A DNA stretch of 64,000 nt from Malacoraja senta. Taxonomy: Eukaryota. A model generated the notes under the pieces. It worked only from the letters and a program-made list of their open reading frames with translations, was not told the origin of the DNA and did no database searches. The stretch is taken from contig CM075978.1 of the NCBI GenBank assembly GCA_038087875.1, forward strand, positions 175,150,001 to 175,214,000, written 5' to 3'. The stretch's first letter is position 1; the number at the start of each line of letters is the position of its first letter. Positions 24,028 through 54,010 of the stretch are shown here, piece after piece. A program made the position numbers and the translations under genes.

Positions 24028-26096
24028 ATTCTAAGGGGAGTATGAGGCAACCGTGGCAGACAAGAGAAGTTAGGGATATAATAACATTAAAAGAAAAGAT
24101 GTATAACACAGCAAAGAGTAGTCGGAAGCCAGAGGATTGGGAAACTTTCATAGGACAACAGAAGGAAACAAAACGGGCAATACGGGCTGAAATGGTGAAG
24201 TACGGGGGGAAGCTGGCCAGGAATATAAAGAAGGACAGTAACAGCTTCTTTAGATATGTTAAGGAAAAAAGAGTAGCAAAATCAGATGTAGGTCCCTTGA
24301 AGGCAGACACGGGCGAAATTATTATGGGGAAGAAGGAAATGGCAGAGGAGTTGAACAGGTACTTTGAATCTGTCTTCACTAACGAAGACACCAACAATCT
24401 CCCGGAAGTACTGGAGGATAGAGGATCAAAGGGGGTAGAGGAACTGAAAGAAATGATCATTAGGTGAGAAATAGTATTGGGTAGGCTAATGGGATTGAAG
24501 GATGATAAATCCCCTGGGCCCGATGATCTGCATCCCAGGGTCCTCAGGAAGGTGGCTCTAGAAATAGTGGTCGCACTGGTGATCATTTTCCAATGTTCAA
24601 TAGATTCAGGATCAGTTCCTGTGGAATGGAGGATAGCTAATGTTATCCCAATTTTCAAGAAAGGAGCGAGAGAGAAAACGTGGAATTACAGACCAGTTAG
24701 CCTGACTTCGGTGGTGGGAAAGATGCTGGAGTCAATCAATAAAGCGGTAATAATGGGGCATTTGGATAGCAGTAAAAGGATTAGTCCAAGTCAGCATGGA
24801 TTTATGAAAGGAAAATCATGCTTGACTAATCTTCTGGAATTTTTTGAGGATGTGACAAGCAGAATGGATGAAGGGGAGCCAGTGGATGTAGTGTGTCTAG
24901 ACTTTCAGTACGCCTTTGATAAGGTCCCGCACGGGAGACTGGTGACTAAAATTAGAGCACATGATATTGGGGGTAGGGTGTTGACGTGGATAGAACATTG
25001 GTTGGTAGACAGGAAGCAAAGTGTAGGAGTGAACGGGTCCTTTTCAGAATGGCAGGCAGTGGCGAGTGGAGTGCCGCAATGCTCGGTGTTGGGGCCGCAA
25101 CTGTTTACGATATATTAATGATTTGGAAAAGGGAATTAGGACCAACACCAGCAAGTTTGCAGATGACACAAAGCTGGGTGGCAGTGTGAACTGTGAAGAG
25201 GATGTTAGGACGTTGCAGGATGACCTGGACAGGTTGGGTGTGTGGGCAGATGCGTGACAGATGCAGTATAATATAGATAAATGTGAGGTTACCCACTTTG
25301 TGGCAAAAACAAGGGGACAGATTATTATCTCAATGGGTTAGGTTAGGTAAGGGGGGGTACAGCGAGACCTGGGTGTCCTTGTACACTGGTCACTGAAAGG
25401 TGGCGTGCAGGTACAGCAGGCAGTGAAGAAAACGAATGGAATGTTGTCCTTCATAACAAGAGGATTTCAGTATAGGAGTAGAGAGATTCTTCTGCAGTTG
25501 TATAGGGCTCTGGTAAGACCACATCTGGAGTATTGTGTACAGTTTTCGTCTCCTAATTTGAGGAATGACATCCTTCTGATTGAGGCAGTGCAGCGTAGGT
25601 TCACGAGATTGATCCCTGGGATGGCGGGACTGTCATATGAGGAAAGATTGAAAAGACTAGGCTTCTATTCACTGGGGTTTAGAAGGATGAGGGGAGATCT
25701 TATAAAAACATATAAAATTATAAAAAAGACTGGACAAGCTAGATGCAGGCAAAATATTCCCAATGTTGGGCGAGTCCAGAACCAGGGGCCACAGTCTTAA
25801 AAAAAAGGGGAGGCCATTTAAGATTTAGGAGAGAAAAAACGTTTTCAGCCAGAGAGTTGTGAATTTGTGGAATTCCCTGCAACAGAGAGCAGTGGAGGCC
25901 AAATCACTGGATGGATTTAAGAGAGAGTTAGATAGAGCTCTAGGGGCTGGTGGAATCAAGGGGTATGGGGAGAAGGCAGGCACGGGTTATTGATTGGGGA
26001 CAATCAGCCATGATCACAATGAATGGCGGAGTTGGCTCGAAGGGCCGAATGGCCTCCTACACCTATTTTCTATGTTTCTATGTTTCTATGTTTCTA
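24028..26096 (+). mobile_element. 5'-truncated, disabled CR1 LINE (same subfamily as 1-1871)
   Basis: ORF fragments 24042-24467, 24477-25118 and 25405-25800; (TATGTTTC)n tail. Confidence 0.95.
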
Positions 26097-30553: not shown

Positions 30554-30665
30554 GAACAAGCGTTAAACTCATCTGCTTTCGGGCGGGTGGATTTGCCATA
30601 TGCGTTTTAATTATTCTAGCGCTGGTATTTTTTTGTCAGGCGGTACGAATTAGACAGTACTGAAG
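30554..30665 (+). CDS. Gene A exon 4: transmembrane exon with Arg (TSVKLICFRAGGFAICVLIILALVFF); contains an apparent +1 T frameshift
   Basis: Strong acceptor tttcatttccctttag| and donor AG|GTAAGA. As written it stops at 30663; with one T fewer in 30628-30634 it reads VRRYELDSTE through to a phase-1 donor. Confidence 0.88.
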
Positions 30666-32679: not shown

Positions 32680-32775
32680 AATCCAACGTACGCAGATTTG
32701 AACTTCAGCAGACAGAAGAAAACTGAGAAAAACAGACGGGACGAAAAACAAACTGGCTATGCTCAGGTCAGATAA
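32680..32775 (+). CDS. Gene A exon 6: terminal cytoplasmic exon NPTYADLNFSRQKKTEKNRRDEKQTGYAQVR*
   Basis: Acceptor gttccctcag|, phase 0; two tyrosine motifs (PTYADL, TGYAQV); AATAAA at 32881-32886. Confidence 0.8.
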   Translation, partial: NPTYADLNFSRQKKTEKNRRDEKQTGYAQVR

Positions 32776-33419
32776 AAGCGGAAGGGTGCTCCAAGGAAAA
32801 TTCGCGTACGTCGCCCATATAGGCGAATCGGCAGCTAATGGTCTTTGATTATTTTTCGATAGGTCAAAGAAGTGTCTGAAAATAAACTGACCTACGCAAC
32901 TCTGGATCTCATCGCTTCTCCGAAAGATCCAAGAACGGAGAAGAATAATGTAACAGAATATGCAGGAATGAAGATTTTAAAATGGCTGCGAAATCATCAA
33001 ACGTTCATTAGAGGTCATCCAATTTAAATTACATAAACCTGACTAACATTGTGTCACAGATCGCACAGATACATTAGCATTTACAAGAGAATCAGCAGTG
33101 AGCAGGGGATTTTAATGAGATGTTCTTCTCTGATAAACGTTACTCTCGTTAACGTCGATAGAAATACGATTAATTATCAGACTCTCGTCGCAATTCCTAG
33201 CTAACCACATAAGACCCTTATCTATCCACTTTTAGCCCATCTAAGTGCTTGTGGAAATGCCAGCTAAAGGGTGTGTATGTGTCTGCCTCCACCAACTCCT
33301 TGCCAGCTCGCCCATGGTAGTCACCATATTGTGCGTACATAATTATCTCACTCTATTCCACTCATCTCATCTGAAGCATACGCTCATCAGTTAAATATTT
33401 CTCCACTATATTAAGACAA

Positions 33420-34013
33420 AGACTGAATATCTATCCTGCCTCTACACCCCATACTTTAAGAAAATTGAACAGGTGCACCGTAGAAAGCATCGTATCGGGA
33501 TGTATCCCAGCTGGTTTGGAAATAGCTCCATCCAAGACCGCAAGAAATTGCAGAGAAATGTGGAGCAGCCCAGACCATCACGCAAACCACCTCCCTGCCA
33601 TTGACACCATCTACATTCCACGCTGCCTCGCAAAGCCACCACCAATGATGGTCTCAACACGGACACTCCCTCCTCTCCTCTCTCCCATCAGTCAACGGGA
33701 TTACGAAAGTATGAAAACGCACAGTGCAGATTCAGTGACAGTTTCTTCCCAGCTGTTATCAGGCAACTGGACCATCCTACCACCAACTAGCGAGCGGTCT
33801 TGTGCTACTATCTGCCTCATTGGTGACCTTCGGATTATCTTTAATCGTACTTTACTGGACTTGCACTAAACTGTACTCCCTTTATCCTGTATCTGTACAC
33901 TGTTGTGGCTTGAATGTAATCATGTACAGTCTTTCCGCTGATTGGATAGCCCACGACAGAAAAGATTTTCACTGTACCTCGGTACACGTGACAATAAACT
34001 AAATTAAAATAAG
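33420..34013 (+). mobile_element. Degenerate Rex1/Babar-like LINE 3' fragment
   Basis: RCTVESI..GCI...LPAIDTIY..RCL; 3' end gtacacgtgacaataaac; a similar 3' UTR lies near 21870-22050. Confidence 0.7.
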
Positions 34014-34709
34014 CTAAACGTTCCGATGCGAATAAACCCATCACTCTTAACCTCTATTTATAACAGAGGTTATGTCTGGCGAATGGCTCCTGCACTCTCC
34101 TGATCCCTTTAAACATAATCATGCCATCGCCAAAGGTAAATCAGCTAAAGCCAGGCAGAGTCGTCAAATAGTTCCAATTGTGCGTTAGCCCTACTGTTCA
34201 TTACGTCGACGAAATTGAGTTATCATTAAACAAAGAAGATGATGTTTTTGGAATAAAATTGCCTCTTTAGATCTACCTTTACCTGTTGTCTTTCCACACA
34301 CCCGTCAATGCGCTCTGTTCCAAGCTGCTGTCATATTCCAAGACGCATTCAGGGTGCGTCTTTAAGTTCCGTCGATAACTGCCAATCTTTAGTAGGAAAA
34401 ATAGACGTAATCAATGAATGGAAAATAAAGAGGCCGTATTACAGATTCACAATTATACAGTCGGACACGAGAAGATCTTCATACAATGGAGACACAAGTG
34501 TCTGGAACCTTGAGCAAAAAATGGAGTGTCGGGGTATCTATTCCGCAGGCCAGACAGCTTATGTGAAAGGGAAGGGAAGACGGGCCCTTCTTCAGCTCTG
34601 CACATAAAATATCAAATTGCTCAAGTAGAATTATTTAACTTTATATTTTCATTTTGATATGCAGCTGAAGAATTAGAAATGTACATTCTTTGAAACCTGT
34701 CATAAGAGT

Positions 34710-34737
34710 CTGAAGAAGGGTCTCGACCCGAAACGTC
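34710..34737 (+). ncRNA. Candidate minimal type I hammerhead ribozyme core in a Penelope-derived unit (representative copy)
   Basis: CUGAAGA-A-GGGU(CUCG)ACCC-GAAAC-GUC; sister copies at 5241, 22375 and 60623 have GGGU(UUCG)GCCC. There is an extra A after the CUGANGA box and stem III is only a palindromic ACGU. Confidence 0.5.
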
Positions 34738-34923
34738 ACCCATTCCTTCTCTCCAGAGATGCTGCCTGTCCCGCTGAGTTACTCCAGCATTTTCTGCCAC
34801 GACTCTTGGTCTATCGTGCAGGGATTTTGCTAAATTGGTCCATTTTTATGTCATTAGTGTCACCTGCATAACCCATTTGTTCATGTTCCATTCCTCATTT
34901 CTCACGTTCAAGGCCTGCACAGT

Positions 34924-35527
34924 CAATAGACAATAGACAATAGGTGCAGGAGTGGGCCATTTGACCCTTCGAGCCACCGACATTCAATGTGATCATGGAT
35001 GATCATCCCCAATCAGTACCCCGTTCCTGTCTTCTCCCCATATCCCCTGACTCCGCTATTTTAAGAGCCCTATCTAGCTCTCTCTTGAAAGCATCCAGAG
35101 AACCTGCCTCCACCGCCCTCTGAGGCAGAGAATTCCACAGACTCACCACTCTCTGTGAGAAAAAGTGTTTCCTCGTCTCCGTTCTAAATGGCTTACTCCT
35201 TGTTCTTAAACTGTGCCCCCTGGTTCTGGACTCCCCCAACATCGGGAACATGTTTCCTGCCTCTAGCGTGTCCAAGCCCTTAATAATCTTATGTTTCAAT
35301 GAGATCTCCTCTCATCCTTCTAAACTCCAGAGTGTACAAGCCCAGCTGCTCCATTCTCTCAGCATATGACCGTCCCGCCATCCCGGGAATTAACCTTGTA
35401 AACCTACGCTGCACTCCCTCAATAGCAAGAATGTCCTTCCTCAAATTAGGGGACCAAAACTGCACACAATACCCCAGGTGTGATCTCACTAGGGCTCTGT
35501 ACAACGGCAGAAGGACATCTTTGCTCC
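34924..35527 (-). mobile_element. CR1 3' fragment with (CAATAGA)n tail
   Basis: Minus ORFs 35289-35504 and 35003-35299 encode the CR1 RT C-terminus. Confidence 0.9.
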
Positions 35528-37112
35528 AGTCAGAAGGCCAATTAATGGTATACTTTGAACGGAGGAAGTGCCATTATCCTCCATTATTACTGACAATTAA
35601 ACCACGTGAGGAGCATTATGTTCAATTCTGGTCGACAGGGTGGGTCTATTTACGCTGGTCATAGTGCAGAGGTGATTCAGTGGTCTGTTGCCTAAATTAG
35701 AACATTTTAGTTATGGGGTGAAATTTGATCGGATTGGAATGTATTCCTCGAGCCTACGAGGCAGAGTGATGAACTGCTGCACGTATGTCAAATTATTGGA
35801 GGCATAGACAGTGACGACAGTCAGTATCTTTTCCAATTCAAGTCATATAGGAATCAAGAAGGCAGAGACCATATGCAACACTCAATTGACGAGGAAACGC
35901 CGACATGTCCCGTAGTCAAAAGAAGTAACCGTTTTCGTATGTACCCGGCTTCTACTCGTGCCGATGAAGTCATTGACCCAAGACCAGCATGAGCGGTCTA
36001 ACTTGAAGAGTCTATTTTTAATTAGGAAGCATTTGAAACGTTTCATGTTCGATAATGTATGACCCCTGAGTAAAAAACATCTCCACGTCAGTTCAATGCA
36101 GATCCTTACGTTTGTTAATGGGCAAGGTGTATGATCTGAAAGATGAATCCTAATGGTAAATTTCATAACTGGAATTGTCAGTTGATTGGGTTCAAAGGAG
36201 CATTTATTTGAGTCAGTAATAGCTTGAAACAATCCACATTGTTTGCGGAATATCCGAGTAAATTTGTTTATTTTTAATCTATAAGGAATGCATGGATCCA
36301 TAAATAAACTGAACAAAATCCACCATATACCAGAGCACTTGAAAATATGACTGCCTCGTCACTAATATTCCTGCGAATTTTTCAGAGTACGGTAGATTAC
36401 AATTTACAGTTTGGTTTATGTTTCCTGTATTGATGTCCATTTCTTCTACCACGCGTTCAGGTCGACGATGTGTTGTCTGTAAAATAGTGTTTCATAAGTA
36501 AGATCGTCGTCAATTCATTTCACCTTTTGCTTTGACAGCTGTGTCTCAGTAACTACGCCACCAAAATAAATTCATGGATCCATAAATAAAGACAATGCAT
36601 TCCGTAACACTGAATTGAAAATAAATATCCTCTCTCAGCTCTCGAACAATTTATTGGTAAATTATCCTTGATCAGCTTGTATTCATCTTGTTTAATTCCT
36701 TTTATCTTCAAATTTTTCAGTATTTCGTGACTAAGAAATTATAAGATGTTTCAGCTTCTAGCCGTCTACCACTNNNNNNNNNNNNNNNNNNNNNNNNNNN
36801 NNNNNNNNNNNNNNNNNNNNNNNNNNNNNNNNNNNNNNNNNNNNNNNNNNNNNNNNNNNNNNNNNNNNNNNNNNNNNNNNNNNNNNNNNNNNNNNNNNNN
36901 NNNNNNNNNNNNNNNNNNNNNNNNNNNNNNNNNNNNNNNNNNNNNNNNNNNNNNNNNNNNNNNNNNNNNNNNNNNNNNATTTTCTCGAAAATCAGACGCA
37001 AAAACGCGGAGATTTTTACAATTTCTGTAAGGATTTAACTTACAATTTCATAAATGCACTCCTCTCTAGATTTGGTCAATTATATCCCCAGATTTTGAAT
37101 AAAATTGTTCAC

Positions 37113-37331
37113 AAACTGCTGCATGAGTCAGTGCCACCTCACAGATGTCCAATTACAATGGATCTCATTTACATACATGACATCACAATGGGACAGGGTG
37201 TGGGAGATTGGAACCTTCACGTGGTCCCACTAAAATCAAACTGCTGCATGAGTCAGTGCCATGTCACAGATGTCTAATCACAATGGATCTCATTTACATA
37301 TGCCATCACAATGGGACAGGGGTGGGAGATC
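37113..37331. repeat. Two diverged copies of a ~95-bp unit (period ~123 bp)
   Basis: aaactgctgcatgagtcagtgcca...caatgggacaggg(t)gtgggagat occurs twice. Confidence 0.85.
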
Positions 37332-37990
37332 TCTCCCCCTCCCTCCCTCCCTTACACCCCCGTGCCTTCCCCCACTCCCCCATCTCCTCTCTCCCCTCCT
37401 CCCTCCCCCACTCTCTCCCCCCCTCTCTCCCCCCCTCCTCTCTCTCCCCCTCCTCCTCTCTCTCTCCCCCTCCACTCACCCCCTCTCCTCTCTCTCCCAC
37501 TCCACTCCTCTCTCCAGCTCTCCCCTCCCGCTCTTCCTCCCCCTCTCCCCTCTTCTCCCCCACCCTCTCCTCTCACCTCCCCCTCTTCCCCTCTCCTCTC
37601 CCGCCCCTTCCCCCACAACTCTCTCCCCCCTCACCCATCCTTCCCCTCCCCCCTCTACCACCCCCTTCCCCCTACCCCTTTATCCCCTTCACCCTCCCCG
37701 CTCTCCTCCCATCCTCATCCCCCTCCATCTCCCTTCCCCCTCCCCTTTCCTCCCCCTCCCCACTCTCTCCCCATCTCCCCCTCCCCACTCTCTCCCCATC
37801 TCCCCCTCCCCCTCCCCACTCTCTCCCCATCTCCCTCTCCCCTCCTCCCCCACCCCCCCCCCTCACCCACCCATCCTCTCCTCCTCCCCTCCACCCCCTC
37901 TCCCTCTCTCTCTTGCCCTTCTGTCTCTGCCCCTCTCTCTCTCTGTCTCTCCCCATTCTCTCTCTGCCCTCACTCTCTACCCCCCCTCTC
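37332..37990. repeat. ~650-bp C/T-rich low-complexity tract
   Basis: Almost all pyrimidines on +; the Pro/Ser- and Gly/Glu/Arg-rich ORFs here are compositional artefacts. Confidence 0.95.
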
Positions 37991-40900
37991 TAGACGCGCC
38001 TGCGAGTTGGGGGGCTATGCGTCAGTGGATAGGGCGGATATGGGGTAAAAGGAGCAAATTAATAATATTAATATAATATCAAGGGGGGTAGTTAGCGTGT
38101 GTGCGGGGTGGTAGTTAGTGTGTGTGACGCCACATGCCGCCCCCCCCCCCCCCCGCAACCGCACGTTGGGGGAACAGACCCATCGGGTCTGCACTTGGTC
38201 TAGTAAATTATATTTTTGTTGCTTCGTGTGGAGAGTAATTGAATCTTCGAGAAAGAAATAGGCTATTTGGCCGATCTTATCCATACTGGTCAAGCAGTTC
38301 TCTGCACTTCACCATCCCCACCATCCTCTCCATTTTAAATCATCAACATTAGGCATTTCCTCAAGATGGTGGTATCCATCGTCCAGGCTCCCAACCATAA
38401 GGGACATGCGGTTTCACGCCTCTACCATCCTGCAGGAGCCGCAGAAGCCTAAAACCCCACCCCGCCAGGTTCAGGAACAGGCACCTTCCAACAACCAAAA
38501 GGTTCTTGAAGTAGCCTGCTCAATCCTAATTCTACCTCAACAATAAAACACGATGGCACAACTATGAGCTTGTTTTTTAAAATTGTATTTGCATTAATTT
38601 ATTGTTTTCTGCCACGTTTCTTTATTCTTGCCATTGCCAAGCAGATGTTACGTATAACTTAAGAATAATTATGTATAATTGTATGTTGGTGAGGCTGCAT
38701 TTGGAGTATTGTGTTCGATTTTGTTTATCCTGTCATTAAGCTAGAAAGAGTGCAGAGAAATTTTACGAGAAAGTTGCTAGGAGTCGAGCGCCTCAGGTAG
38801 AGAGAGAGAGAGAGAGGAGCATTGCAGGAGCCTGAGGTGTTATCTTACAGAATGCATCAAATCAAAGAGGTGAAATTATAGGATAAGTCCACAGATACTA
38901 TTTATATCCAAGGGGAGGAGATCAAGAGCTAGAGGACATAGGTTGAAGGTGAGAAGTGAGAAATTTGTAAGGAACCTGAGGGGTAACTTTGAGAAACTTG
39001 TTGAGGCAAGTACAATCACTAGATTTAAACGATATTTGGAATATACTTGGTTAGCCAAGTTTAATGAGATATGGGCCATAGGCTGCGTCTTGATATGCGG
39101 AATCTGGTCAGAATGGACTATTTCCATGATCTATGATTCCATGACTATGTAATGAGAACAGGTTAATAAACAGTTGTACGCTAGAGAAGATCGACCATAA
39201 CATAACAGAATTCTTCATTAAGGTGGAGATTGGGGGAGTCGTTAATTTGAGATTAAGGTCCTGAATTTTATTTAAAAAATAAGGTATAAACAATATTACT
39301 CAATGAGATGAGAATGGATAGGTAATGATAAAATTAAACGAAAAACGTGCATGAGTTACAATTGCTTTCTTCTGTCTGGACCAAAAAAAACTGGTTCAAC
39401 CATGGAGTTCCATCCAATTTACGGATAATATTAGAACAAAAACAAAGAATGATAAGTACATGGTGGTCTCTTCAATTGCCAGTTGTGAAGCCAATCTATA
39501 AAATCTCCACAGATCAAACGAGCCACGATCTTCTGGATCAGTTACCACGAGGAAACGTATTCAAAGCGTTACTGAGATCCATATATACAACATCCATCGT
39601 TTATCTTCCTCAGCTGAGAGTGAACCTGTGGAAGGCAACTCGTCCAAGACGGAGTTCCTAGCAGCGCCCTTACGACATGCGCGGATCAATTGGCAGAGGT
39701 ATTCAAACATCTCTAACCTCGTTATTCTAATCTGAGGTCCTCACATGCTTCTGGAAGGTGACTTTTATCCCATTGGCAACGAACAGTCAGGTAGCATGCC
39801 TTAATGACTGCCGCCCACAGGCTCTGACATCCACCGTCCTCAGCGAGGCTTGTGATGATGCACATTAACACCAGCCTCCCAGTCAATTAGGCTGAGGTTT
39901 CTCGGGTTGTCGCAAGTTCTCTGGTAGGTCGCCTGAATTGGGTAAAATGATCATTGTCAATGCCCCAACAGTTCCCTCTTTTGCTTCTCAAAACTAAGCT
40001 GGGATGGATCCCCCTTCATTATATAAATAACCTCTAAAATATCCATATCTCATAGATCTCGCTTTCCTCAATTGCATCAATTTGGTGACTACTGATGCGA
40101 AGTGCACGCTTGATACCCCAGGCAACTTTTCTAGCTCCAGGTGTAATTGTCGTCCTTTGTCCTTGAGTGGCCATAACTCAATCCCTGGTTGCCTTCTTGT
40201 TTTTACTATATGTATATAATGCCTTGGGATTTTCTATAATCCTACTCGCTAAGGATATTTGATACCAGATTATCCAAGACCACTTTGTCTGCCTTACAGC
40301 GCCAGAGACCAGGAATCGATCCTGATTACGGATGCTGTTTGTACGGAGTTTGCACGTTTTCCCTGTGACGCCCTGGGTTATCTCCGGGTGCACTGCTTTC
40401 CTCCCGCATCGCAAGGACTTGCAAGTTTGTAGATTAATTGGCTTCTGTAAAATAAATGTCCCCAGTGTGTATGATACACGTGTAATCGTTGGTCTGCGCG
40501 GATTCAGTGGGACCAAGGGCCTGTTTCCACGCTGTATCTCTAAACTAAATTAAAACCTAATTTCCTGTTGAACCTCATCCCTGTTTTCTTTAGATTCCTG
40601 AAAGACATTTAATCGAACGGGTTCTACTCTGCCCTTCCAGATTTGGATTGCTTATCGCGTATTCAGCTATTTAACTTTTCAATGGCTGTGTTGTCGTATT
40701 CCAGTGATTCCAGTGATAATAAGTTCGTAAGTTCATAGGTTCTTGGAGCAGAATTAGGCCATTCGGCCCATCAAGTCAACTTCGCCATTCAATCGTGGTC
40801 GATCTATCTTGCCCTCTAAACACCGTTCTCGTGCCTTCCCCACGTAACCCCTGACACCCTTACTAATAATCCGTCACTCACCGCTTTAAAACATCAATTG

Positions 40901-43900
40901 GCTTGACTTCCACAACAATGAATTCTACAGATTCACCACCCCCTGACTGATGAAATGCCTCCTCATCTCTTTTCTAAAGGTACCTCATTTTATTCTGAGG
41001 CTATGGTCTCTGGTCCCAGACTCTATAAGTGGCAACAACCTCTCCATTTTACTCAAGCCTTTCACTATTTGGTAGGTTTCAATGGGATTCATAATGAAAT
41101 ATCACAGGATTAAAATGGGCTTACCTATGATCCTTTTGATCAAAATCGACCAAACGTTTACCAAAATGTAATGCTTTAAACACTTAAAGCATAAAAGACA
41201 TATGGGCCACTTTCTGTTTTTGAAGCTCCCTTACAAAATGTCGGCACCTAACCCACCACGAGACCCGAAGTTTACGCCAGAGTCATTATAATCACGTTGT
41301 TTGAATAAAAAAAACGCGACGAATGCACCCCCCCCCCCCGTTATAGCGCAATATAAAGTATACACGACGTTACTCAACGGGGGACGGTGGGAGGGGGGGG
41401 GGGAGACAACATACAGAATTTAACCGCTAAAATATTTGAGCAAACTAGATTTTTATTTCATGATTTTAAGTTATATTCATTAATAAGTATTTCAATGGAA
41501 AGCTTAAACACAAAAGAAAAACAATTATGTATGTATATATATATAAACGGTTACACTGCTTTTAATTAACACATTTAACACGTGACCAAATTGACACTGC
41601 TACTCACGTTCTGTTGCAAAAACTTGCTGCATCAGAAAATCCTTATCGGGTGATAAATGATAAAAATCATAAGCATAATCAGAATTTGACTTATTTAATT
41701 GCAAAATTAATGTAATCTTTCTGGTATAAATTAGCCTTAGGATTTGATGAAATCCTGCTTGAAAAATGTCACAAAAAAAAGGCAAGAACACAGGGACATA
41801 TCTGATTTTTTCTTTGTAAAAACAGGTTTATTTATTTTTGCTTCATCTCATTATTTTGGTTATACGCCATGATTTATACTACTTAAAATCCAGGGTATGA
41901 AACAATGGGAAAATTACATTAATAAAATCAAGGACATAATCTGCAAGTTTGGAACATAATCTGGAAGTTTCACTACTGAGTGCTGTATTTACGGAAACGC
42001 TTATATCAGTTCCTCTCTATTCCGCTAGTAGCGAGGAAGTCTACAATATAGCCCACATAGTCTACAAAGACATCCACAGAGCAGTAATAAAATATGGCTG
42101 GAAAACGTAGCAAAATTGGGGATTATGAGAACTTTAGGCTTCAGCCACGAGGTTAAGGGTAGTTAGAAGGGTAGATGTAGAATATAAGATGAAGCTTACG
42201 GATATTTAACCACTGACTGCAAAAGCTTCTATGTATAAGTGTCTGTATGTGAGTGTGTGCGTGTGTGTGAAGAGGGAAGATAGATGATGGAAATCTTAAG
42301 TACCTACAGTCAGGAACGGTATCATTTATACAGAATTTGAATTATAAATTATTAAAACAAAGAAATAGGAGGACAATTAAAAATGCCATTTGATTAGCTT
42401 GAATGGGGGATTTAAAATGGCCTTGGATCTCTTTGAGAAACAGCTTGTCTAGTCGAGGGGAGGAACTAAGTGAAACCAATACTAGTGGATAAACGGTGTC
42501 TGTAGAATGAAGGTGACTGGCACCAATAAATCTCGAGGACCCAAAAGGCTCCACCAAAGTAAAACTTAACAAAATAGCTTTGGAAGTAATTGAGCAAAGG
42601 GAGTTAAAAATAGAATGGGGGGAAAGCGACCGCTCATAGCAAACGTCAATTTGTGAAACGGCGATCATGCTTGGCAAGTCTATCGTATTTTTGAGGAAGT
42701 AACTAGCAGAATATGTGAGGGGGAGTCCGTCGTTTTAGAGTATTTATACGCCCTGAAGCATTTCAGTAAAATCTTACCGAACAGACTAGAACAAATTAAA
42801 GGTTAGCATGTTGAGAGTAATCAGCAATTAGTTGGCCAACAGAAAAGAAAGAGTGGAAATAAACAGGTATTTTCCCCACTAGTAGCAGGCATTGAGTAGT
42901 AGGGTACCATCGAGTTCATTGCTGTGATTTCAGCTAGTCACGATATATATTGATAATTAGATCATGGAATTAAATGTATTGTATAGCTGTTTATCGACAG
43001 CATCAAACTGCGTGAGAGGATGAGCACTCTGGTGGATGCTGAGAAGCTTCGTTTTGAGAGAAAGGACAGATTCACGGCGGATGGAGTGCAATCTTAATAA
43101 ATGCGAGGTTCAACTTCGGTGATAATGACAAGAAGGACGATCATTGTCTGAATCCCGATAGATTATGAAACGCAGCAAAGCAACGAAGGAGGCAAATTAT
43201 AGAATGTTCTTCATATCAAGTGGATTCCACAATAGAAGAAGCATTGTCTCAATGCAGTTGTATAGACATTGTTGATTGCTCTCCTTGAGAGTTGAGTATA
43301 TTTTTGTATATTTGACTGTGAACAGATCTTCATGTGATGGTGTGAGTCAGTGAGATTTCAACAGGCTGGTAGACTGCGTCAAGACTGACCTATGCATTGG
43401 ATTAAATTGGGGTACTTAAGTTAAAATATGGAAGCCTAAGAAGGTAGCCCACAGAATGCTTAAATATCCACGGTCTAGGAAAGATATGATGGAGTAAGTT
43501 TGTTCGCGATTGATGGGAAAATCAGTACCAGGGATCATTATCAAAGAATAAGGGAAAATCCACTTCAGACTGTGATGAGGACCGCGTTCTTCTCTAGGAG
43601 ATGAGAACATCTACATATTTCTCTATATCATAAATCACTCGAATCCAAATGATTAAATACATTAACAATGGAGTACATATTGTTATAACATGACAGAGAC
43701 CTACAGCAGTAAACACATATCTGGGATCAAGGGACATTGGGAGAAAACAGGAGCTGGACATTGAATTTGCAAGTTGAGCCATGATCATACTGAACGACCA
43801 AGCAGGTTCGAAGGATCATATGGCCTATCCCTTCTCTAAATTCTTCGTTCCTATCTCAGTGCTTCCATAAATATCATCAGGTACATAATTGAGCCTACAA

Positions 43901-44045
43901 CAGTTATGTTTGCCGAGGACATTTATTTTGTTCTAATTTCTCCACGCAATTTGACTTGCAGTAACATTTGAAAGCCAAACGAAGGTAATAATTGGGAGTA
44001 AGTCCGAGTGTCGTTCGAATGTATCTGCAGTATTACACGTGTCTA

Positions 44046-44119
44046 TTAATTAATTAATTCATTCATTCGTCTTGCCTTCGTTTTCTGATCGGCACTTTCT
44101 TTCGATGTTCTGCACGTCC
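44046..44119 (-). CDS. Gene B exon 5 (predicted): short cytoplasmic tail GTCRTSKESADQKTKARRMNELIN*
   Basis: Pyrimidine-rich acceptor ttttctctctaaattacctccctatag|, phase 1; minus-strand AATAAA at 43927-43922; no tyrosine. Confidence 0.65.
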
Positions 44120-44781
44120 CTATAGGGAGGTAATTTAGAGAGAAAAAATCACTCTTGGCCTAGACAAAGCGTAGTAGCCAGTACATCTAGCAGCATATAA
44201 AACGTTATATTTTTTCTGATTACTTTTGTGTATTGTATACATGTATGCAGTGAAACTAATATCACGATAACAATAGTTAAAAATCTATAGAATATGAGTC
44301 CTCTTCAAGTTGTCGAATCGAAGCAGAATCAATTGCAAAATGAGTTTTTGCATCACCGACCCATTTTCTCAGACTCCACCCCTTATTCCACAACCTGGCC
44401 CACAACACCAAGCATCAATCCTTCATGTACAAATCGGTGACTAGCTCACAGGTTAGCTTCCGAGAAACCATGCACCTAATGAGATGCGGCGGGTGTATTT
44501 ATAGATCAGCTGTGTCCGATCCAATAAAACTCTCAAACATTATTTTCTCCAGTATATCTGGTTTCCCCCCCAGAGATTTACAGGTTTGTAGGTTAATTGG
44601 CTTGATATAATTATAAATTGTCGTTAGTGTGTGTAGGTTGCGGGGATCGCTGTTCGGCGCCGACTTGGTGAGCCGAAGGGCTTGTTTCCGCGCTGTATCT
44701 CTAAACTAAACTAAAGTATTGCTGAATTCCGATTGGTTAATTTTACAACAATCTAGAGATCAAATAGCTTCGGAGTCTTAC

Positions 44782-44874
44782 CTTTATATATCACAATGAA
44801 AGTAACGATTATGATAGGTATCAATCCTGCTCTTATGTAACCAAAAAGCGTATTATGAAGTGGATTAACAAAAA
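44782..44874 (-). CDS. Gene B exon 4: stalk + transmembrane with Arg (FVNPLHNTLFGYIRAGLIPIIIVTFIVIYK)
   Basis: Acceptor ttttttattgtttacag| and donor AAG|GTAAG; 93 bp, phase 1/1; same R-A-G motif as gene A. Confidence 0.9.
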
Positions 44875-47800
44875 CTGTAAACAATAAAAAAGATAGTGGT
44901 CAATTTTAACATATGTACAGTATTATATAATAGGACTGGCAATCAGTTCAACAGCGTCATTCTGTCTCTTTTTTTTAAATATCGATTTGACTTTTCGACG
45001 CGAAATAAACAGATATGAACATTGCCCATGAGCGCAGTTGCTGTTTCCATTTCTGTCCAATCCCAGTTGTGTGCATATGACTCATACAATGAAAGCATTA
45101 TTAAGGTGCAGAAACCTCCCAAATATTTGGCTACAACCAATACTGATCATTTCGAAGTGTGTATGTAGCCATGTTGCAGAGCGTAACATGTAGTGATGTA
45201 TAGCTGTGTCGGTACAACAGGCCATCTTGTGGAATATCCAGAAATGGGAAATTATAAAAACACTTATTTACTCTTCATCATGTGATTATACAGTGAGGCT
45301 GGACAAAATTCCACGCCGTCATTACGTTTATGACGGCCCTGATGTGCCCAAAGCTGAGTTCCAGACGATGCAATATTCGTAGAATATTGGGAATGTAATT
45401 ATGGAAATTGAATTTTGCTGTGAATTACGATCCCAAATCGACAGGAATCTTTTAAATTAAATTCAAGAGCGTGGGTGGATAATCCAAGGTAGATTTCGCT
45501 CGCTGTGACTGAGCAGTTACAAACGAGGTATCGTACAACACAGAAATACACATTCCTATATTTTGTTTATTTTTTAATCCAGGATGCGGATAGACAATCT
45601 GTCTTTTGGACCCTTCATTATATAGATGTGCATGACTTAGTAGTTCAATTCCAAAGGTGGATTGATGTTCTCTGTGTTCAGGGTGGCACGGTGACCATCT
45701 GCTTCAGAGGGCGGTGGAGGCCGGTTCTTTGGATACTTTCAAGAGAGACCTAGATAGGGCTCTTAAAGATAGCGGAGTCAGGGGATGTGGGGAGAAGGCA
45801 AGAACGGGGTACTGATTGGGGATGATCAGCCATAATCACATTGAATGGCGGTGCTGGCTCGAAGGGCCGAATGGCCTACTCCTGCACCTATTGTCTATTG
45901 AAAATCGATACAATAAAAATGCACAGTCGACAATGCGCCTTTCCTGCAGAATATCAATGAACTACCTGGAGGGGTTAGATATTGCGGCAGCTTCACATTA
46001 TCCCCTCTAAACACAGAATATTGTTATTAATTTGAGGTAATTAATTAATATCAACCTATCAGCAGTACTATTAAATTGCATTAAATATGCAATGATTTGG
46101 AACGGCATACCCGCGCATCTTTATTGAAAGGATGCGCACATAACAATTTCCGTCCTGTCTCGTGATCTTATTTCAAATGCATCAAATGACAACAGACATC
46201 GGTCAGCTTTTATCTTTGATTGCAAGTTTTGTAAGAACCGTGAACTGATTACTTAGTGGACTTTATTACATCCATCCTTTCGAACCCGGATAATCGAAGA
46301 GCAACGTCCTATTCCCCGCTTTTTCTTGATTACTCTCTCCATCACTTTCCTTCGTATGCCTCCCTGAAAGCTCGTTTATTTATTAGTTGCTTGCTTTATT
46401 CCTATGAGCGACAACTTTAATAACCAACATTTTGTTTGAAGCTTTGTCGAATCCTTTTCTCAAAAATTCTTATTGACGTCATCTACATCAATTATTCATC
46501 AAATTGTCTTGTTACTTCATCAAAAAACCATTTGTCCAATAGACACACGGGAATTAATTGTATAATTTGCTCGTTAGACTTTCTCCATTATGTACAAATG
46601 TCTCTAATGTACAAGCAATGGTCCTTATTCGGGCATGAAACAGCATGCCCTCATTATATTTACAGAAATTCTGGCGTAGGTTTTCTAATGCAGTTATTTA
46701 TCTTCAATGATGATGCTGGCAGATCATGTAACCATGACGAAATTTTCAAATGTCTCTAATTTAATTACATTGAAACCATCTGTTAGATTTGTTTAATCAT
46801 GGGCGGACGCTGCCTACTTTTAGCGAAGAAGTACATTGGAATTCATTGGAAATTGAATTCTAACAAGTAAAGTAAGTGAACCTGGAATTATGTAACGCAA
46901 TTCATTTGAAAAATGGCAATTATAACCGATCGTGTGAAATCTGCAAGCGAAGGACAAGGTCCCAGCGCAAAAAGTAATTTATGGAGAGCATAAATTTCAA
47001 GAATAATGGTAAATAAATGAAAAACACGCAGAATTACTTTGTGGAATGTTGTCTTCCCCTGCCTCGACAGGTTTAGAAATCGTGAAACACGAATGGGCAA
47101 ATCCCTTGTAAAGTTTAAAGAATCTCACTGGTTGTGAGTGGATTGGTGCAAAGGAGAATAAGTCCAGTCCAAATCTGAAGAAACATATTGAGGGAAGAGT
47201 AAAACACATGCCGGGCGAAGCTAACGTCATATGGCAGGAGTATATTTGCATGATAGGTGAGGCCATATGCAGAAAGTGTGACTTTTGCACAAGCGAACAT
47301 TCGTTCGTATGCCGAGGTGAATCGTCCTGTTTGACATCTCTAGCTGAAGAAGAATAATCATTTATGATGGAAGAAGCATTTTACATCGGTTTATTGCTCG
47401 TAGGACTTCTATGTCAATGTGTTCCTCTCATTGCTAGCATTTATGTCTTGCTTCTACATTCGTTCACAGGCGGACGGGAGACAATAACTTTAGCAAGTGT
47501 GTGTTCCTGATACATGAGCCGTCCGCGTTAAAACTGAGATTTCTAAAATATAACCTTAATTCATTTAACGGTATTCATGACTCCCCAGGTGCGGAACCTG
47601 CCAGACAAAGCCAGCTCTTCAAATACGATCAATGTTGTTGTCGTAATTGCATTAGCTAATCAATAATTATTGTCCATGCACTAAGCTATGTTCGAAACTC
47701 GTTGAGTGGTAAACTAGTAACTCCACAGTAGACGGCTTTGCGAAATCGACAAGGCTGCTTGGGAATCATGGTATTTTGGTGCGCGTGCTGAAGATGTGCT

Positions 47801-47879
47801 GAAAGGAGCGCTGTCACTGGAACAGGCTGGCTACTATCCGCTAAATGCCTGTGTTTTGCTTCAATTACGCAGAGGAATG

Positions 47880-49260
47880 ACAGTTGATGAGCCTCACGTC
47901 AGTGAAAGGGAAGTTATTGAAGATAATAATTCGGGATAGATTTTCTTGGCATTTGGAAGAAAGTGGATTAATTACCGACGGTCAGCATGTCCACGGCAAG
48001 TCAGACTGATCGAGAAAATTAGGATGCATGGGATTCAGGGTGAATTGGTCCGAGTTGGTCGTCTGGATTCAGAACTGGCTTATTCATAGAAGACAGAGGG
48101 TTCGGATAGAAGGGTGTTATTCTGGATGGAGGTCTGTGACAATTGGAGTTCCACAGAGATCAATGTCTGTGATTTCTATATGAATGACGTAGATGTAATT
48201 GTAAATGAGTTGGTGATTATGTTTGCAGACGACACCAAAATGGGCGAAGTTACGGACAGCCAGGAAGACTGCCAATGTTTTAGATGCACTCGGACCAACG
48301 TGTCAAGGGTGACCAACGATCACTTGTTTACACATTCTATATTATCCCATTTTCTCATACATTCTCTACACATTGCGGACAATTTTATAGAGACCAATTA
48401 ATCTATACACCCGTACATCTTTGGAATGTCGAAGGAAACCGCAGCACCTGAACGAAGCCCACGCGATCATTGGGAGAAAGTGCAACCTCCATACAAACAG
48501 CACCCGAGGTCAGGGTTGAACCAGGGTTTCCAGCGTTATGATGCGCATCTCTACCAGCTAATCTACATTGCTGCATTTAACCACGATGCTCTCTGGATTA
48601 GAGCGTAATGGGCATAAGGAGATGTTGGAACAGAGGTTGTCTCCACCCGAACGATGGAGGCTGAATGGATTCCAGATGGAAGTACATGTAATTGTGGCAT
48701 CATATGTCAGATCCCTTTTCTCATGTTGTAAAGGTTAAAGACCAGAGGACGTGGGTTTACGTTGGAGGGGCAAAGTTTAAATGAGATATGCCGAGCAAGT
48801 GCTTAGCACAGAGCGTGGTCGGTGTCTGAAGCGTGCTGCTAGATGTGGTAGTGTAGAAATATACAAAGATACAAAGGTACAATAGTGATATTTAAGATGC
48901 TTTTAAAAATACATGAGGTTGATCTTAATATCTTTATGATGCGTAGGTGCGGTCATTTTCCAAGGGTGGAAAGCGTCAATACTAGAGGGCATAGCTATAA
49001 GCCGAGAGTGGCAAAGTTCCATGGAGATGTGCGGGGCATGTTTTTTTACTGAGAGTATTGAGATCCTGGGACGGATTGCCAGGGATAGTGGTGGAAGCAG
49101 ATACGGTAGTGGCGTTTAACTAGCTTGTCGACTGGCGCATGGAAGTGCGGGGACTAGAGGAATATGGATTAAGTACAGGCAGATGAAATCAGTTTAACTT
49201 GGCATCGTGTTGTGCACAAACATTGCGGCCGAATGTATGCCAGTGTTGTACTTGGTATGA
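47880..49260 (+). mobile_element. Old degenerate CR1 fragments (one of many; others near 1900-2540, 5500-6350, 27000-28000, 29950-30440, 42640-43850)
   Basis: Residual motifs such as MFADDTKMG (48114-48401) and a CR1-type 3' UTR; boundaries approximate. Confidence 0.65.
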
Positions 49261-49940
49261 TTTTTGTTCAGCCTCCGCTACACAAGCGAAAAAAGGCCCA
49301 GCCAATCCAATCTCCACCCTATAACTAAAACCATTCTGATCTGATTATATCCTCGTAATCGCCTTTGTACTGTTTATACCCTTTCACGGCAGGGTGACAA
49401 GAAGTGTACACAATTCACGATTATTCACATTTAGTACACTTGTAGTGTGTTTCATGTACTCGATATACCGACTGATGAAGACAAATGTATGCCTTCTTCG
49501 TTACAACTATCTATTTCTGCCGCAACTTCCATGGAACCATATACATGTGCGCCTAGGCTTCTCTGTCCCACAACACCCACCATGGCTTTGCCATCTATGT
49601 TATGTCTGTCCTATTTTGTTTTCCGAAAAATCAACACTGCATTTAACGTAAACAGTGCAAAGGCGATTTCGAGGATATAATCAGGTCAGATTGGTTTCAG
49701 TTATAGGGTGGGGGTTGGATTGGATGGGCCTTTTTGCGTTAGTGTAGAGGAGGCTGAACATAAAACATACAACAGTACAACACTGGCTTACATTCGGCCC
49801 GCAATGTTTGTGCACATCACGATGCCAAGTTAAACTGATTTCATGTGCCTGTAAATGATCCATATCCCTCTACTCCCCGCACTTCCATGCGCCTGTCGAA
49901 AAGCTTCTTAAACGCCACTACCGTATCTGCCTCCAACACT
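49087..49940. repeat. Long inverted repeat: ~290-bp arms (49087-49376, 49649-49940) with a 272-bp spacer
   Basis: Arms align in reverse complement along their whole length, roughly 85-90% identical by eye. Confidence 0.9.
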
Positions 49941-50484
49941 GTGCAATTGTCATTCCTCAGCCCATTGGCCGACTTGACCAAGATGCCGTTGTAATGTTTG
50001 ATAAACTACTTCATAGTCCACCAAACCACAATTTATTTGTGCTACCCGCAAACTATCCTTGCATGCACATCCAAATCGTTAGTATACAAAAACAGACAGT
50101 GGACCCAACACCGATCCCTGTGGCATACTACTCATCCGAGACCTTTAGCCATAGAATCAATCCTCTACCATTGACCATCTGCCTCAAGGCAATTTCGTAT
50201 CCAATTCCCCGGATCCAATGCGAACTAACCATTCCGATTTGTCAACCAATACCTTATCAAATTACTCGCTAAAGTCTAAATAGGCATAGCATCGCAATTC
50301 CTGATCAATGTTCATGGTCACCGCTTCAAACCCCTTACTCAATTTCGTAAGACGCGAATTTCCACGCACAACCAAAATTTGACCCTCCATGATCAGTCCA
50401 TGGCTCCCCAAATGCATGCAGACCCTGTCCAATGATTCCTGTTCCTGTGGCCAAATTGCATCGGAAATGTATCGTTATTCTTAC

Positions 50485-50787
50485 CTCGACTGTAGAAAGT
50501 ATAACTGATATTGGTTGGATTCGGAAGAGAAATATGAGACACCTGGCAGGTATAAACTGTCCCGCTCTCCACATGGCCTGTCTCGGTCAGGCAGCTCCAA
50601 GCTTCGTACAGTCCTGCTGTTGTCTGCGTTTTGTTTGGATCAATCTTCTGTATAATATCTGACCCATTTTTGTACCAAGTAATATTTAGATCAAGAGGAA
50701 AGAACGTTGCTGTTTTACAAACGAGAATTAGAGCAACTGATGTGTTCACTGGCAGCATGGTGGTCAAGCTCAGAGGAGTTGGGCGGT
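50485..50787 (-). CDS. Gene B exon 3: Ig C1-set domain
   Basis: Acceptor ttttattttccag| and donor G|GTAAGA, phase 1/1; LVC...FFP.DLNITWYK...GTVYTCQVSHISL. Confidence 0.95.
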
Positions 50788-52900
50788 CTGGAAAATAAAA
50801 CGATTATTAAATTTCACCAGTCCGGTGATTTTCGTGACTTGAATCAAATTTCATTGCAGCCTCGAAAATAATCTTCATTGAACAATATTTTTTTTCAGCC
50901 TAGTTGTATAACTAATGCACTTAAAGCGATTTAAAACTGCTAAGTTTGTTCCTTGTGGTATAAACTAACGGCTAATTTCATTCCTTTTAAACCTTTTTAT
51001 TGTATGCCCTGATTTTACAGTTTGCGTCTATTATACAACAATTACCTTACTTCATAAATATCATATCGTTTCTGTTTCTACTCGCAGCGCAAGTAAATGA
51101 TGCGTTCTGTTCCATGCACAGACATTAAGAGCCAAAGCATTAACTTGAATTTTCTAAACGTCTTCACGATTTTTATTATAATTTGGTGATATCATTGTAC
51201 AAAATGTAACCCATAATAACAGCTCGACTATCAAAATGTTACAAATATATTCTTTACCGTTGTTGAAATAAATAAATCGTGCAGAAGATTTATTCAGCAG
51301 TAACTTGAGGTCAAAAATATGTTTGAGTTAGAAGGTCAGAAAAATGTGTGTCCTTGTGTGAAACAATATTGTAAAGTTGGACCAGAGCGTACAGCTTGCT
51401 ATTTATAATTCCGTTAAGCACAGAAGAAAGTAATTGCATTACTTCGAGAGCAATTATCCCAGCACCAACACATTCCCTTAAGAATTTGGATGGTATGTTA
51501 AGGCCTCCGACACACCATATCAATGACATTCATTCATGGAAAAGTCACCAACCCTTTCCATTTACAACAGCTCAAACAGTGATCAGCGTCTGCGTACGCC
51601 GCCCAAAATGTAGGCTTGAGATACAAACTACAAGTACATTTGCACCAGTTATAAACAATCCTTTTTCAATATCTATATGATCTTAATGCCATTTCCATCG
51701 CTTGGAAGGTGAGCGGAGAATACACGTTAATGCAACAATGTGTAGGAAGGAACTGTAGATGCTGGGTTAAACCGAAGATAGACACAAAAAGCTGGAGTAA
51801 CTCAGCGCGCAGAAGGCATCTCTGGATAAAAGGAAAAGGTGACGTTTCGGGTCGTGACCCTTCTGCAGACTAAATGTAACAATATAGATCTTGAATTTTG
51901 CATTCCTCAATGATTGACTCGATTCACGGCTCCTATATAATTTCAAGTAATCCGGGACAATCAGATGTGTGACCAAACTTATACTACGGTTAAACATGGT
52001 ACCAATTGAGCAAGTGCAAAAGAGGTTCACCAGAATGTTGACTGAAATAAAGGGCCTTTTTATAACGAGACATTTGGTAAACTGCGTTTATTCTCAATGG
52101 AAGGAAGGAAGCAGAGTAGTGACTTAATAAACGTTTTTGTTTTAAATATCGGGGCCACATAGCATAGACGGGGTCTTTTCCTCAGAATAGTGGAATTAAG
52201 AACTATGTGGCACGGTTTTTAGGTAAAAGGGGGGAAATGTAAATGAGAAGAGGAAGTTTTACATACCTGGAACATCTACCACCGGAGAGGGTGCAGTACA
52301 ATAATAACATTTAAATTGCGTTAGACCAGTAATTGCGCAGAAGCGTTATAGAGCGATATGGGCCTAATGCAGGCAAACAGCATCAACATACACAATTAGC
52401 ACCGTCGGCAGAGGCGACGTGGGCAGAACGGGCCAGTTGTTGTGTTGTATGATTCTATGATTCTGTAATTCCTTACACTTGTAATTCCTTACACTTTAGA
52501 TTAAAAAAAGATGGCAGCTCCAAATATATAAATTAAAAAAATAATATCCTTGATCAGTACCACATTCGGAACCCTACATATTTTCAATCTCAACTACCTG
52601 TGCCGTGTGTCGTTGGTTTCAGTAACACCATTCCCTCTGCGTTGAAGCAATTCTAAAATATATGCGAAAGGTTCTATAATTCTGTCAAGCAGATGTGGAA
52701 GGCGTAATTTACTCTCTCCATCGGTCTATTCGGATTCTTTGGTAATTGCGTCAAAAATACTATCTAACCAATCACACAAATCATATTATTTCAAAGGACA
52801 CAGATGATGAATAAAGCGCAATTTCTTCAACGTGATTGAGCTTATCGCTTTGAGTTGGTGAAGTTAACCGATCTGGCTTACCCCTCTCCCCGAAACTCAC

Positions 52901-53212
52901 CGTAAACTACCAGCTTTGTACCAGTCCCGTTTAAAACGTTGGTACGTGTCAAGCTGCAAAAATAGAGCCCGGCGTCCTTCACTGTCACGTCCTCCAGCCG
53001 TAAGACAGCGCTTCCCCCTCTCAGGAAATAAAACTGGATTCGTTTATCTGCACTTTCATCCAGGAATCTATTATCCCCATCTCTCCACCAATGCACTTTG
53101 TACGGCCTGTTGTCTGAGAAGATTGGATAAATGCAGTAAAGCACTGCCGAGTCACCCCGCATCAAAACAGCTTCTGGAACTTGTGTTACGGTCAACGGGC
53201 CATCGTCACCAG
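52901..53212 (-). CDS. Gene B exon 2: Ig V-set domain with J-like GTGTKLVV G strand
   Basis: Acceptor tttcgtttcccgacag| and donor G|GTGAGT, phase 1/1; VLYC..VHWWRDG..DAGLYFC..NGTGTKLVVY. Confidence 0.95.
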
Positions 53213-53401
53213 CTGTCGGGAAACGAAAAATGAAACGATAAGGCTTAGGATTAAACTAATGACCAAATTAATTGAAAATTGTACGTAACGAGAACAAAAA
53301 TAAAGATAAACTTATAAGTTAATAATTAAGTTAATTTATAATATTTAAGTTATAAATATTTATAACTAAATTTATAATAATTAAGTTAATTTAAAATATA
53401 C

Positions 53402-53453
53402 CTGCGCAGCTGACGTGAAGAACAATCAATTGCAGTAAGACACGTGTCATCAT
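53402..53453 (-). CDS. Gene B exon 1: signal peptide MMTRVLLQLIVLHVSCA
   Basis: ATG ATG, hydrophobic core, phase-1 donor CAG|GTATAT, 189-bp intron in frame with the V exon. Confidence 0.88.
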
Positions 53454-54010
53454 TCACGGCAAAACTGCAGAGAACAGTCGAATGAAACAAGTGTCGAATA
53501 AATAGTGAGAGAGGAATACCGCGAGTATGCTTGGGTTCAGTGGGTGTGCCGGAAAGTGAGTCTGCTCATGCTCGTGCCTCTCTGCGCATTGACGCGGATC
53601 AAAGGTCAAGTTAGTGGCTGCTCACACATTTCCGAAAACTTCACAAAGCATTTGCTGAACAACTACAGAAATTCAATGCAGCTAGAAATTGCTGCCATTG
53701 CGCTTTAGCCCATGCTCTCTATTAAGCAATGTCCTCGTACTGATCGTCCCGAATATGCTGTCCACGGTCGACCTTTGTGAAAATACAGTGACGGGTCGCA
53801 GATGCGCCCTGCTTTGATTGCGCCAATACTTTCCATTCAACACGCCATGATGCTAAGCAAGCTAAGTCATCATGAAGTATCAAGCAAGTACATAGAGCCT
53901 TTCTCGAAACAGTTCAGCCACCTCCTCCTCCACCCTTTGCCCAGCCTTTGCTACATTTTACTGCGGTATGACATGCAAAGCGCCAGAGGTTCACATTGTT
54001 GAGTTCATTG

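Follow-up and report, generated by a model that had tools for sequence, protein, structure and literature searches.

Activating KIR and Ly49 receptors arose from inhibitory ancestors through truncation of the tail and gain of a basic transmembrane residue, with the ectodomain kept matched, and SIRP-beta uses a transmembrane Lys together with DAP12. Pairs of activating and inhibitory receptors are central to the control of natural killer (NK) cells and myeloid cells in mammals, and almost nothing of this kind has been described for sharks and rays. NKp30 has an Arg in its transmembrane segment and a tail without an immunoreceptor tyrosine-based activation motif (ITAM), and it signals via CD3-zeta (PMC2195691). 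UrIg2 has been described as having nine C1-type domains (PMC12227049). Here, a stretch of 64,000 nucleotides (nt) from the skate Malacoraja senta (GenBank assembly GCA_038087875.1, contig CM075978.1, positions 175,150,001 to 175,214,000; hereafter the window) was analysed, the minus strand of which carries gene B at 53453-44046. Gene B is probably the activating arm of a paired receptor, being predicted to encode a type I membrane glycoprotein of a non-rearranging V(J)-C1 family of cartilaginous fish. Its ectodomain is nearly identical to that encoded by a putative inhibitory partner gene, its transmembrane helix holds a basic residue, and its short tail lacks the immunoreceptor tyrosine-based inhibitory motif (ITIM) and the immunoreceptor tyrosine-based switch motif (ITSM) while the partner has them.

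Gene B consists of five exons on the minus strand amounting to 834 nt and 277 codons with zero internal stops, and all of its junctions are of the GT-AG type and in phase 1. Exon 1 (53402..53453, 52 nt) begins with ATG, encodes the signal peptide MMTRVLLQLIVLHVSCA and is followed by the donor GTATAT. Exon 2 (52901..53212, 312 nt; acceptor ccgacAG, donor GTGAGT) encodes a V-set domain, which ends with a built-in J-like strand, NGTGTKLVVY. A single C1 exon lies between the V and transmembrane exons, namely exon 3 (50485..50787, 303 nt; acceptor ttttccAG, donor GTAAGA), encoding a C1-set domain. The Pfam matches of both domains were above the curated cut-off (V-set, E 2.3e-8; C1-set, E 3.6e-11). 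The protein has six N-X-S/T sequons for N-glycosylation (N112, 136, 156, 162, 173, and 214), four of which are encoded by exon 3. The domain cysteines are 44/103 and 145/202, and an additional Cys187 (AWSCLT) is present in the C1 domain at a position occupied by Cys or Tyr in the relatives of gene B. Exon 4 (44782..44874, 93 nt; acceptor tttacAG, donor GTAAGA) encodes a short stalk and the transmembrane helix. The sixth residue of this 21-residue helix, LFGYIRAGLIPIIIVTFIVIY, is Arg237, whose codon is AGA at 44833-44831. Among the candidates for this exon, it was the only in-phase one whose hydrophobic stretch resembled the transmembrane exons of the family; the stretch at 50117-50054 was also hydrophobic and in phase, but it was rejected as no relative matched it. 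Exon 5 (44046..44119, 74 nt; acceptor cctatAG) encodes the cytoplasmic tail GTCRTSKESADQKTKARRMNELIN, which has 25 amino acids (aa) and no tyrosine motif, and ends with a TAA stop codon. An AATAAA poly(A) signal is located on the same strand at 43922..43927, ca. 120 nt 3' of the stop. These results reproduced the coordinates and frame given in a preliminary description of the locus (five exons of 52+312+303+93+74 = 834 nt from ATG to TAA). The canonical GT-AG sites, the downstream AATAAA, the six ectodomain sequons, the extra Cys of the C1 domain (AWSCLT), and the V-C1-transmembrane organisation with Arg and a short tail, all of which it had also listed, were found again at the positions above.

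Gene B was compared with the locus L001 of Leucoraja erinacea and a 78-kb locus, L002, of Amblyraja radiata (thorny skate), the latter of which carries two tandem gene-B-like genes, copy 1 and copy 2. Since the gene B region showed 89-93% nt identity with copy 2 (L002 60180-68814) as compared to 75-84% with copy 1 and L001, copy 2 was regarded as the orthologue of gene B. The model of gene B is far beyond chance, as the copy 2 gene (L002 60741-67860) has the same five exons with identical boundaries and splice sites, including exon 1 at L002 60741-60792. Copy 2 also retains the Arg (VGCIRAGLIA), the tail GTCRKSKEGADQKTKARRMNE followed by a stop, a GC at the exon-5 donor position, and the AATAAA, which is aligned at L002 67971. 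The 5' flank of gene B (53454..53553, minus strand), a probable 5' untranslated region and promoter, was unusually conserved, showing 95-99% identity across gene B, copy 2, and the copy-1 paralogues as against 81-89% in introns. The proteins encoded by gene B and copy 2 shared 88% identity over 274 residues with zero gaps. The ratio of non-synonymous to synonymous substitution rates (dN/dS; Nei-Gojobori method) between them was 0.44 overall and 0.33 for the V and C1 domains, with an excess of synonymous changes (binomial p=0.006). Judging from these values, gene B is under purifying selection.

The locus L001 of L. erinacea, with its database model P0154, had also been considered as the orthologue, in which case the Arg would be unique to Malacoraja senta. 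This candidate was rejected; L001 is a copy-1 paralogue (75-84% nt identity), and the true orthologue, copy 2 (ca. 90%), has the Arg. P0154 (L001 10001-13106) lacks the signal exon and runs through the exon-3 donor into the intron, and was thus not used as evidence of a secreted form. The NCBI model P0156 (L002 10001-67858) is a chimera in which the C1 and transmembrane exons of copy 1 are joined to the tail exon of copy 2, 52 kb away, and it was not counted as independent support for the joins between exons 3, 4, and 5.

Copy 1 was found in both A. radiata (L002 7689-27970) and L. erinacea (L001). Its V and C1 domains showed 93% and 91-92% aa identity with those of gene B, respectively. The V exons were 96-98% identical at the nt level in all comparisons (97.8% between copy 1 and copy 2 of A. 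radiata), and the transmembrane exon of gene B showed 92.5% nt identity with that of its orthologue and 74-77% with that of copy 1. The number of synonymous substitutions per synonymous site (dS) of the V exon between the paralogues was 0.03-0.08 versus a divergence of 14-19% in the adjacent intron, which points to homogenisation of the binding domain between the paralogues. This pattern of exon identity, in which the V exon is matched and the transmembrane exon has diverged, is typical of paired receptors in general.

The transmembrane segment of copy 1 reads IGAGLI (Gly codon GGA) where that of gene B reads IRAGLI (AGA). Exon 5 of copy 1 is a 44-nt internal exon ending with AAG/GTAAGA in both A. 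radiata and L. erinacea. In A. radiata copy 1, it is followed in frame by three tail exons with canonical AG/GT sites, i.e. a first cassette of 111 nt (IVYSAF ... TIYTQ), a second cassette of 111 nt (LTYTTL ... TVYAQ), and a terminal exon encoding TIHGRPERMAEEMDINTGYNNQIVKS and a stop. This tail thus contains LTYTTL and three ITIM/ITSM-like tyrosines; L001 ends before the tail exons, and the ITIM tail of copy 1 is known from A. radiata. Since ITIM/ITSM-like exons follow in frame, copy 1 is predicted to be an inhibitory receptor. The preliminary description had regarded gene B as an intact activating member of the pair. The first part of this claim held, as the frame, splice sites, Arg, tail, and poly(A) signal are kept in A. 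radiata and the inhibitory exons of the sister gene are absent. The pair itself had to be redefined; gene A, a neighbour on the plus strand, shows only 34% (V) and 41% (C1) identity to gene B and is no matched partner, and on these comparisons the true partner of gene B is the copy-1 paralogue.

The first 44 nt of exon 5 of gene B are the counterpart of an exon that is internal in the inhibitory paralogue. At the ancestral donor position (44075-44074), gene B has GC, and the sequence AAG/GCAAGA is shared by gene B and A. radiata copy 2. Past this GC, the frame of both genes continues for 6-9 codons to a stop. Collinearity between gene B and copy 1 breaks at window position 43258 and resumes at 38667, and nothing in the window corresponds to the copy-1 segment containing both tyrosine cassettes (L002 19963-26989). 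Scans for ITIM/ITSM using regular expressions and tblastn detected no tyrosine cassette exons on the minus strand from 44046 to 33000, in which a run of 205 N (36774-36978) was unread. By collinearity, this run lies inside an insertion whose two flanking segments adjoin each other in copy 1 (L002 27447/27451), and this placement indicates that it is not at a cassette position. No ITIM/ITSM cassettes were detected by the scans downstream of A. radiata copy 2, where the locus has no gap.

A relic of the terminal tail exon (TTHRRPERVVEEMDINTGN...) was found on the minus strand at 36279..36476, 7.6 kb downstream of exon 5, preceded by the acceptor ttttacAG. In A. radiata copy 1, the region of the terminal tail exon is 78% identical to it at the nt level. 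A 1-nt deletion in the relic carries its frame beyond the ancestral stop, and neither a canonical ITIM nor a canonical ITSM is present in it. No such relic exists in A. radiata copy 2. An 8-kb segment of the window between genes A and B (33189-41144) is missing beside A. radiata copy 2. The 3' end of A. radiata copy 1 is collinear with it, with an identity typical of the paralogues (78-85%), suggesting that the segment was deleted in A. radiata after the species split.

The position of the Arg is occupied by Gly or Ala in related inhibitory proteins of manta ray, stingray, horn shark, and sevengill shark, and the Arg of gene B is therefore derived. Its R-A-G is of recent origin, from G-A-G, and the likeness to the R-A-G of NKp30 and of gene A is thus convergent, not inherited.

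Based on these results, we propose that gene B works as described below. The ectodomain, an NKp30-like V domain placed on a C1 domain, is kept almost identical to that of the inhibitory sister, and the two receptors probably see the same ligand. The sister gene would signal via its ITIM and ITSM-like tail exons. In gene B, both tyrosine cassettes have been deleted, the exon-5 donor has changed from GT to GC, the frame reads through to a stop, and a single GGA to AGA change has introduced the Arg in the outer third of the helix. A helix with an Arg close to its outer end, combined with a tail devoid of signalling motifs, marks receptors that depend on an ITAM adaptor of another protein, such as NKp30 with CD3-zeta. 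By analogy with NKp30, SIRP-beta, activating KIR, and similar receptors, this Arg would be expected to recruit an ITAM adaptor of the CD3-zeta, FcR-gamma, or DAP12 type, which has an Asp in its helix. In cells presumed to express gene B, ligand binding would then result in an activating signal.

Several observations weigh against this proposal. The copy-1-type partner was seen in A. radiata and L. erinacea, and in Malacoraja senta it would lie outside the window. The run of 205 N downstream of gene B was unread. The transmembrane and tail segment differs from that of the orthologue by 8 non-synonymous changes and 1 synonymous change and is weakly constrained apart from the Arg; besides this residue, general hydrophobicity seems to be all that has been held. 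No annotated protein of gene B turned up in the protein searches. The only two sequencing runs found shared 0.80-0.81 of their words with a stretch rich in introns, where 0.80-0.81 is the fraction of the words of that stretch; this is DNA-like and not evidence of expression. In addition, according to a survey published in 2014, the FcR gamma chain originated in bony fish (PMC4016189), and the adaptor in skates is therefore uncertain.

Among the other explanations, the one that survives best, which we still consider unlikely, is that gene B is a derivative incapable of signalling (a decoy, or a gene in decay), that it lost its inhibitory tail, and that the Arg is incidental. The dN/dS above 1 of the transmembrane and tail segment would fit this explanation, as would the DNA-like nature of the sequencing runs, the fast divergence of the C1 exon of A. 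radiata copy 2 (dS 0.30), and the fact that the NCBI pipelines gave no clean model of the orthologue, producing the chimera P0156 instead. However, two species whose introns have diverged by ca. 11% both preserve an open frame, the five splice junctions, the codon for Arg, the region of the stop, and the AATAAA, and the dN/dS of the ectodomain is as low as 0.33. Furthermore, chance decay can hardly account for the combination of a Gly to Arg change and truncation, since it is seen again in horn shark and Mobula.

Slightly less likely again is that the main transcript uses the GC donor in exon 5 (after 44076) and joins it to the relic exon at 36476, which would give an 80-aa tail instead of the 25-aa tail. 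AAG/GCAAGA is a good GC-type context at the exact position of the GT donor of the paralogue, and the relic keeps its ttttacAG acceptor and a 65-codon in-phase frame, with AATAAA/ATTAAA-type signals just after it. On the other hand, window 33.2-41.1 kb, and with it the relic, is lacking at the A. radiata orthologue, which nevertheless keeps both the GC and the read-through stop. The relic is also frame-shifted relative to the functional copy-1 exon, and its tyrosines (LPYSEK, QSYFQV, LWYMVD, and FIYGSM) fit no ITIM, ITSM, or ITAM consensus. Even if this splicing were used, the receptor would be non-inhibitory by motif. As for the stop in exon 5, which the preliminary description had taken as the end of the protein, it is present and lies in a conserved region; a different end may arise via the surviving GC donor and the relic exon, adding no canonical tyrosine motif.

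That gene B is still inhibitory and its ITIM exons were missed is very improbable: the unread N run is on the path and the tail exons of the family are short and fast-evolving, but collinearity puts the run in an insertion away from the cassette site, the cassette-bearing copy-1 segment is missing from the window, the motif scans of the minus strand were blank, and the gap-free A. radiata orthologue also lacks cassettes.

We therefore retain the activating arm of a paired receptor as the preferred reading of gene B. The remainder of the window contained other features. Gene A is located on the plus strand (14479-14775, 22601-22837, 30554-30665, 32680-32775, and ca. 32875-32985), tail-to-tail with gene B, and encodes a divergent V-C1 receptor of a different subfamily. 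Its transmembrane segment reads ICFRAGGFA, and its tail exons contain NPTYADL..TGYAQV and KLTYATLDL..TEYAG. The best match of the 5' part of gene A was the middle A-like gene of A. radiata (ca. 88-92%), and that of the transmembrane and tail part was the A-like gene adjoining copy 2 (ca. 91%). A solitary V-exon relic of another subfamily is present on the minus strand at 58292-57973. Its identity to P0083 and P0077, both from skates, is 60-74%. The relic is interrupted by two in-frame stops and one frameshift, its first domain Cys is replaced (YFHSS), and no matching C1 exon was found downstream of it.

The C1 exon of A. radiata copy 2 (L002 62933-63235) was an outlier, having 88-90% nt identity to all others with a dS of 0.27-0.41, unlike the C1 exon of the window, which was 94-95% identical to those of the copy-1 genes. 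This fact suggests that in A. radiata the copy 2 exon either changed at an accelerated rate or exchanged sequence with a third paralogue. Reverse-transcriptase-like retroelement fragments with the motif FADDTK occur on the plus strand at 47800-48400, 792-1238, 11829-11966, 20139-20423, and 25153-25446. One of them is located within intron 3 of gene B, which is 5.6 kb long versus 3.8 kb in A. radiata.

Protein searches were carried out with the V exon and homologues as queries, not with the whole spliced 277-aa protein. When the V exon was searched against 1.84 billion representative proteins, dozens of V-C1-transmembrane proteins of 220-490 aa were obtained. BLASTP matches of gene B extending over both domains included P0002 (E 8e-93) and P0151 from Mobula (E 1e-97). 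The family, which is known from database predictions only, has 30 or more members with the same exon plan in skates, stingrays, manta rays, several sharks, and the chimaera Callorhinchus. Automatic annotation has given these proteins inconsistent names (SIRP-alpha-like, tapasin-related-like, NCR3LG1-like, Ig lambda-like, and uncharacterized), and our literature searches found no description of a chondrichthyan V-C1-transmembrane family. Most members have tails with several ITIM/ITSM-like tyrosines, and several have a charged transmembrane segment and a short tail. In horn shark, P0149 and P0126 are 87% identical; the former has GCARGAL and a truncated tail, whereas the latter has GCAGGAL and an ITIM tail. 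P0157 of Mobula hypostoma has GYVARG and a short tail. We tentatively raise the possibility that inhibitory receptors were converted into activating ones independently at least three times in cartilaginous fish, i.e. in skates (gene B), in horn shark (P0149 versus P0126), and in Mobula (P0157, one residue over). In each case, a Gly or small residue of the helix would have been changed to Arg and the tyrosine tail cut, with the V exon kept in register by gene conversion. If this is true, the oldest living lineage of jawed vertebrates already had adaptor-coupled paired recognition acting on V(J)-C1 molecules that resemble antigen receptors, and the same would hold for the pathogen-driven arms race that is thought to create paired recognition.

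Gene B would represent a new example of a well-known receptor design. The path from brake to accelerator appears to be legible in its DNA: a change of a single base creates the Arg and another inactivates the donor, a deletion removes the two tyrosine cassettes, a relic exon remains, and the binding domain stays matched to that of the brake gene. Gene B and its sister offer a concrete candidate pair with which ligands and adaptors can be sought in cartilaginous fish. The comparison also corrects faulty database models of the relatives, of which P0156 is chimeric and P0154 reads into an intron.

The AlphaFold (AF2) model of the gene B V domain had a predicted local distance difference test (pLDDT) score of 91. 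When this model was searched against PDB with Foldseek, NKp30 structures ranked 1-3 (28-30% identity, E ca. 5e-9), with Ig lambda, the variable domain of shark new antigen receptor (VNAR), and T-cell receptor (TCR) V domains within one order of magnitude of the NKp30 E-values; the E-value of NKp30 in phmmer was 7e-4. PDB matches of the C1 domain encoded by exon 3 were the alpha3 domain of the major histocompatibility complex (MHC), Ig Cmu, and SIRP d2/d3. The best matches of the family profile among V-C1 tandems in PDB were the IgA heavy chain, shark UrIg2 (9dmx, E 2.6e-35), and SIRP-alpha (V and C1, E 6.7e-31). Gene B resembles NKp30 in having a non-rearranging V domain with a J-like strand, an Arg near the outer end of the helix (R-A-G), and a short tail without an ITAM. 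It differs in that the ectodomain of NKp30 is a single V domain, to which gene B adds a C1-set domain.

The order of a membrane-distal V domain followed by C1 is shared with SIRPs, which likewise comprise an inhibitory multi-tyrosine member and an activating short-tail member with a basic transmembrane residue, the ectodomains of the two being near-identical. However, SIRPs have three domains (V-C1-C1) whereas gene B has two, and the transmembrane residue is Arg in gene B and Lys in SIRP-beta. Since the Ig heavy chain and UrIg2 outscored SIRP with the same family profile, no specific orthology with SIRP is shown. The non-rearranging UrIg and UrIg2 of elasmobranchs, like gene B, have a germline-joined VJ followed by C1-set sequence (PMC12227049, PMC10751288). 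They contain several C1-type domains, unlike gene B with its one C1 domain, Arg-containing transmembrane segment, and short tail, and neither has been presented as a paired activating/inhibitory receptor of two domains that carries a transmembrane Arg. With regard to the route of conversion, gene B would have followed that of activating KIR and Ly49, each step being visible in the DNA, although those receptors are built from unrelated domain types (C2/I-set, or lectin in the case of Ly49) and pair a Lys with DAP12.

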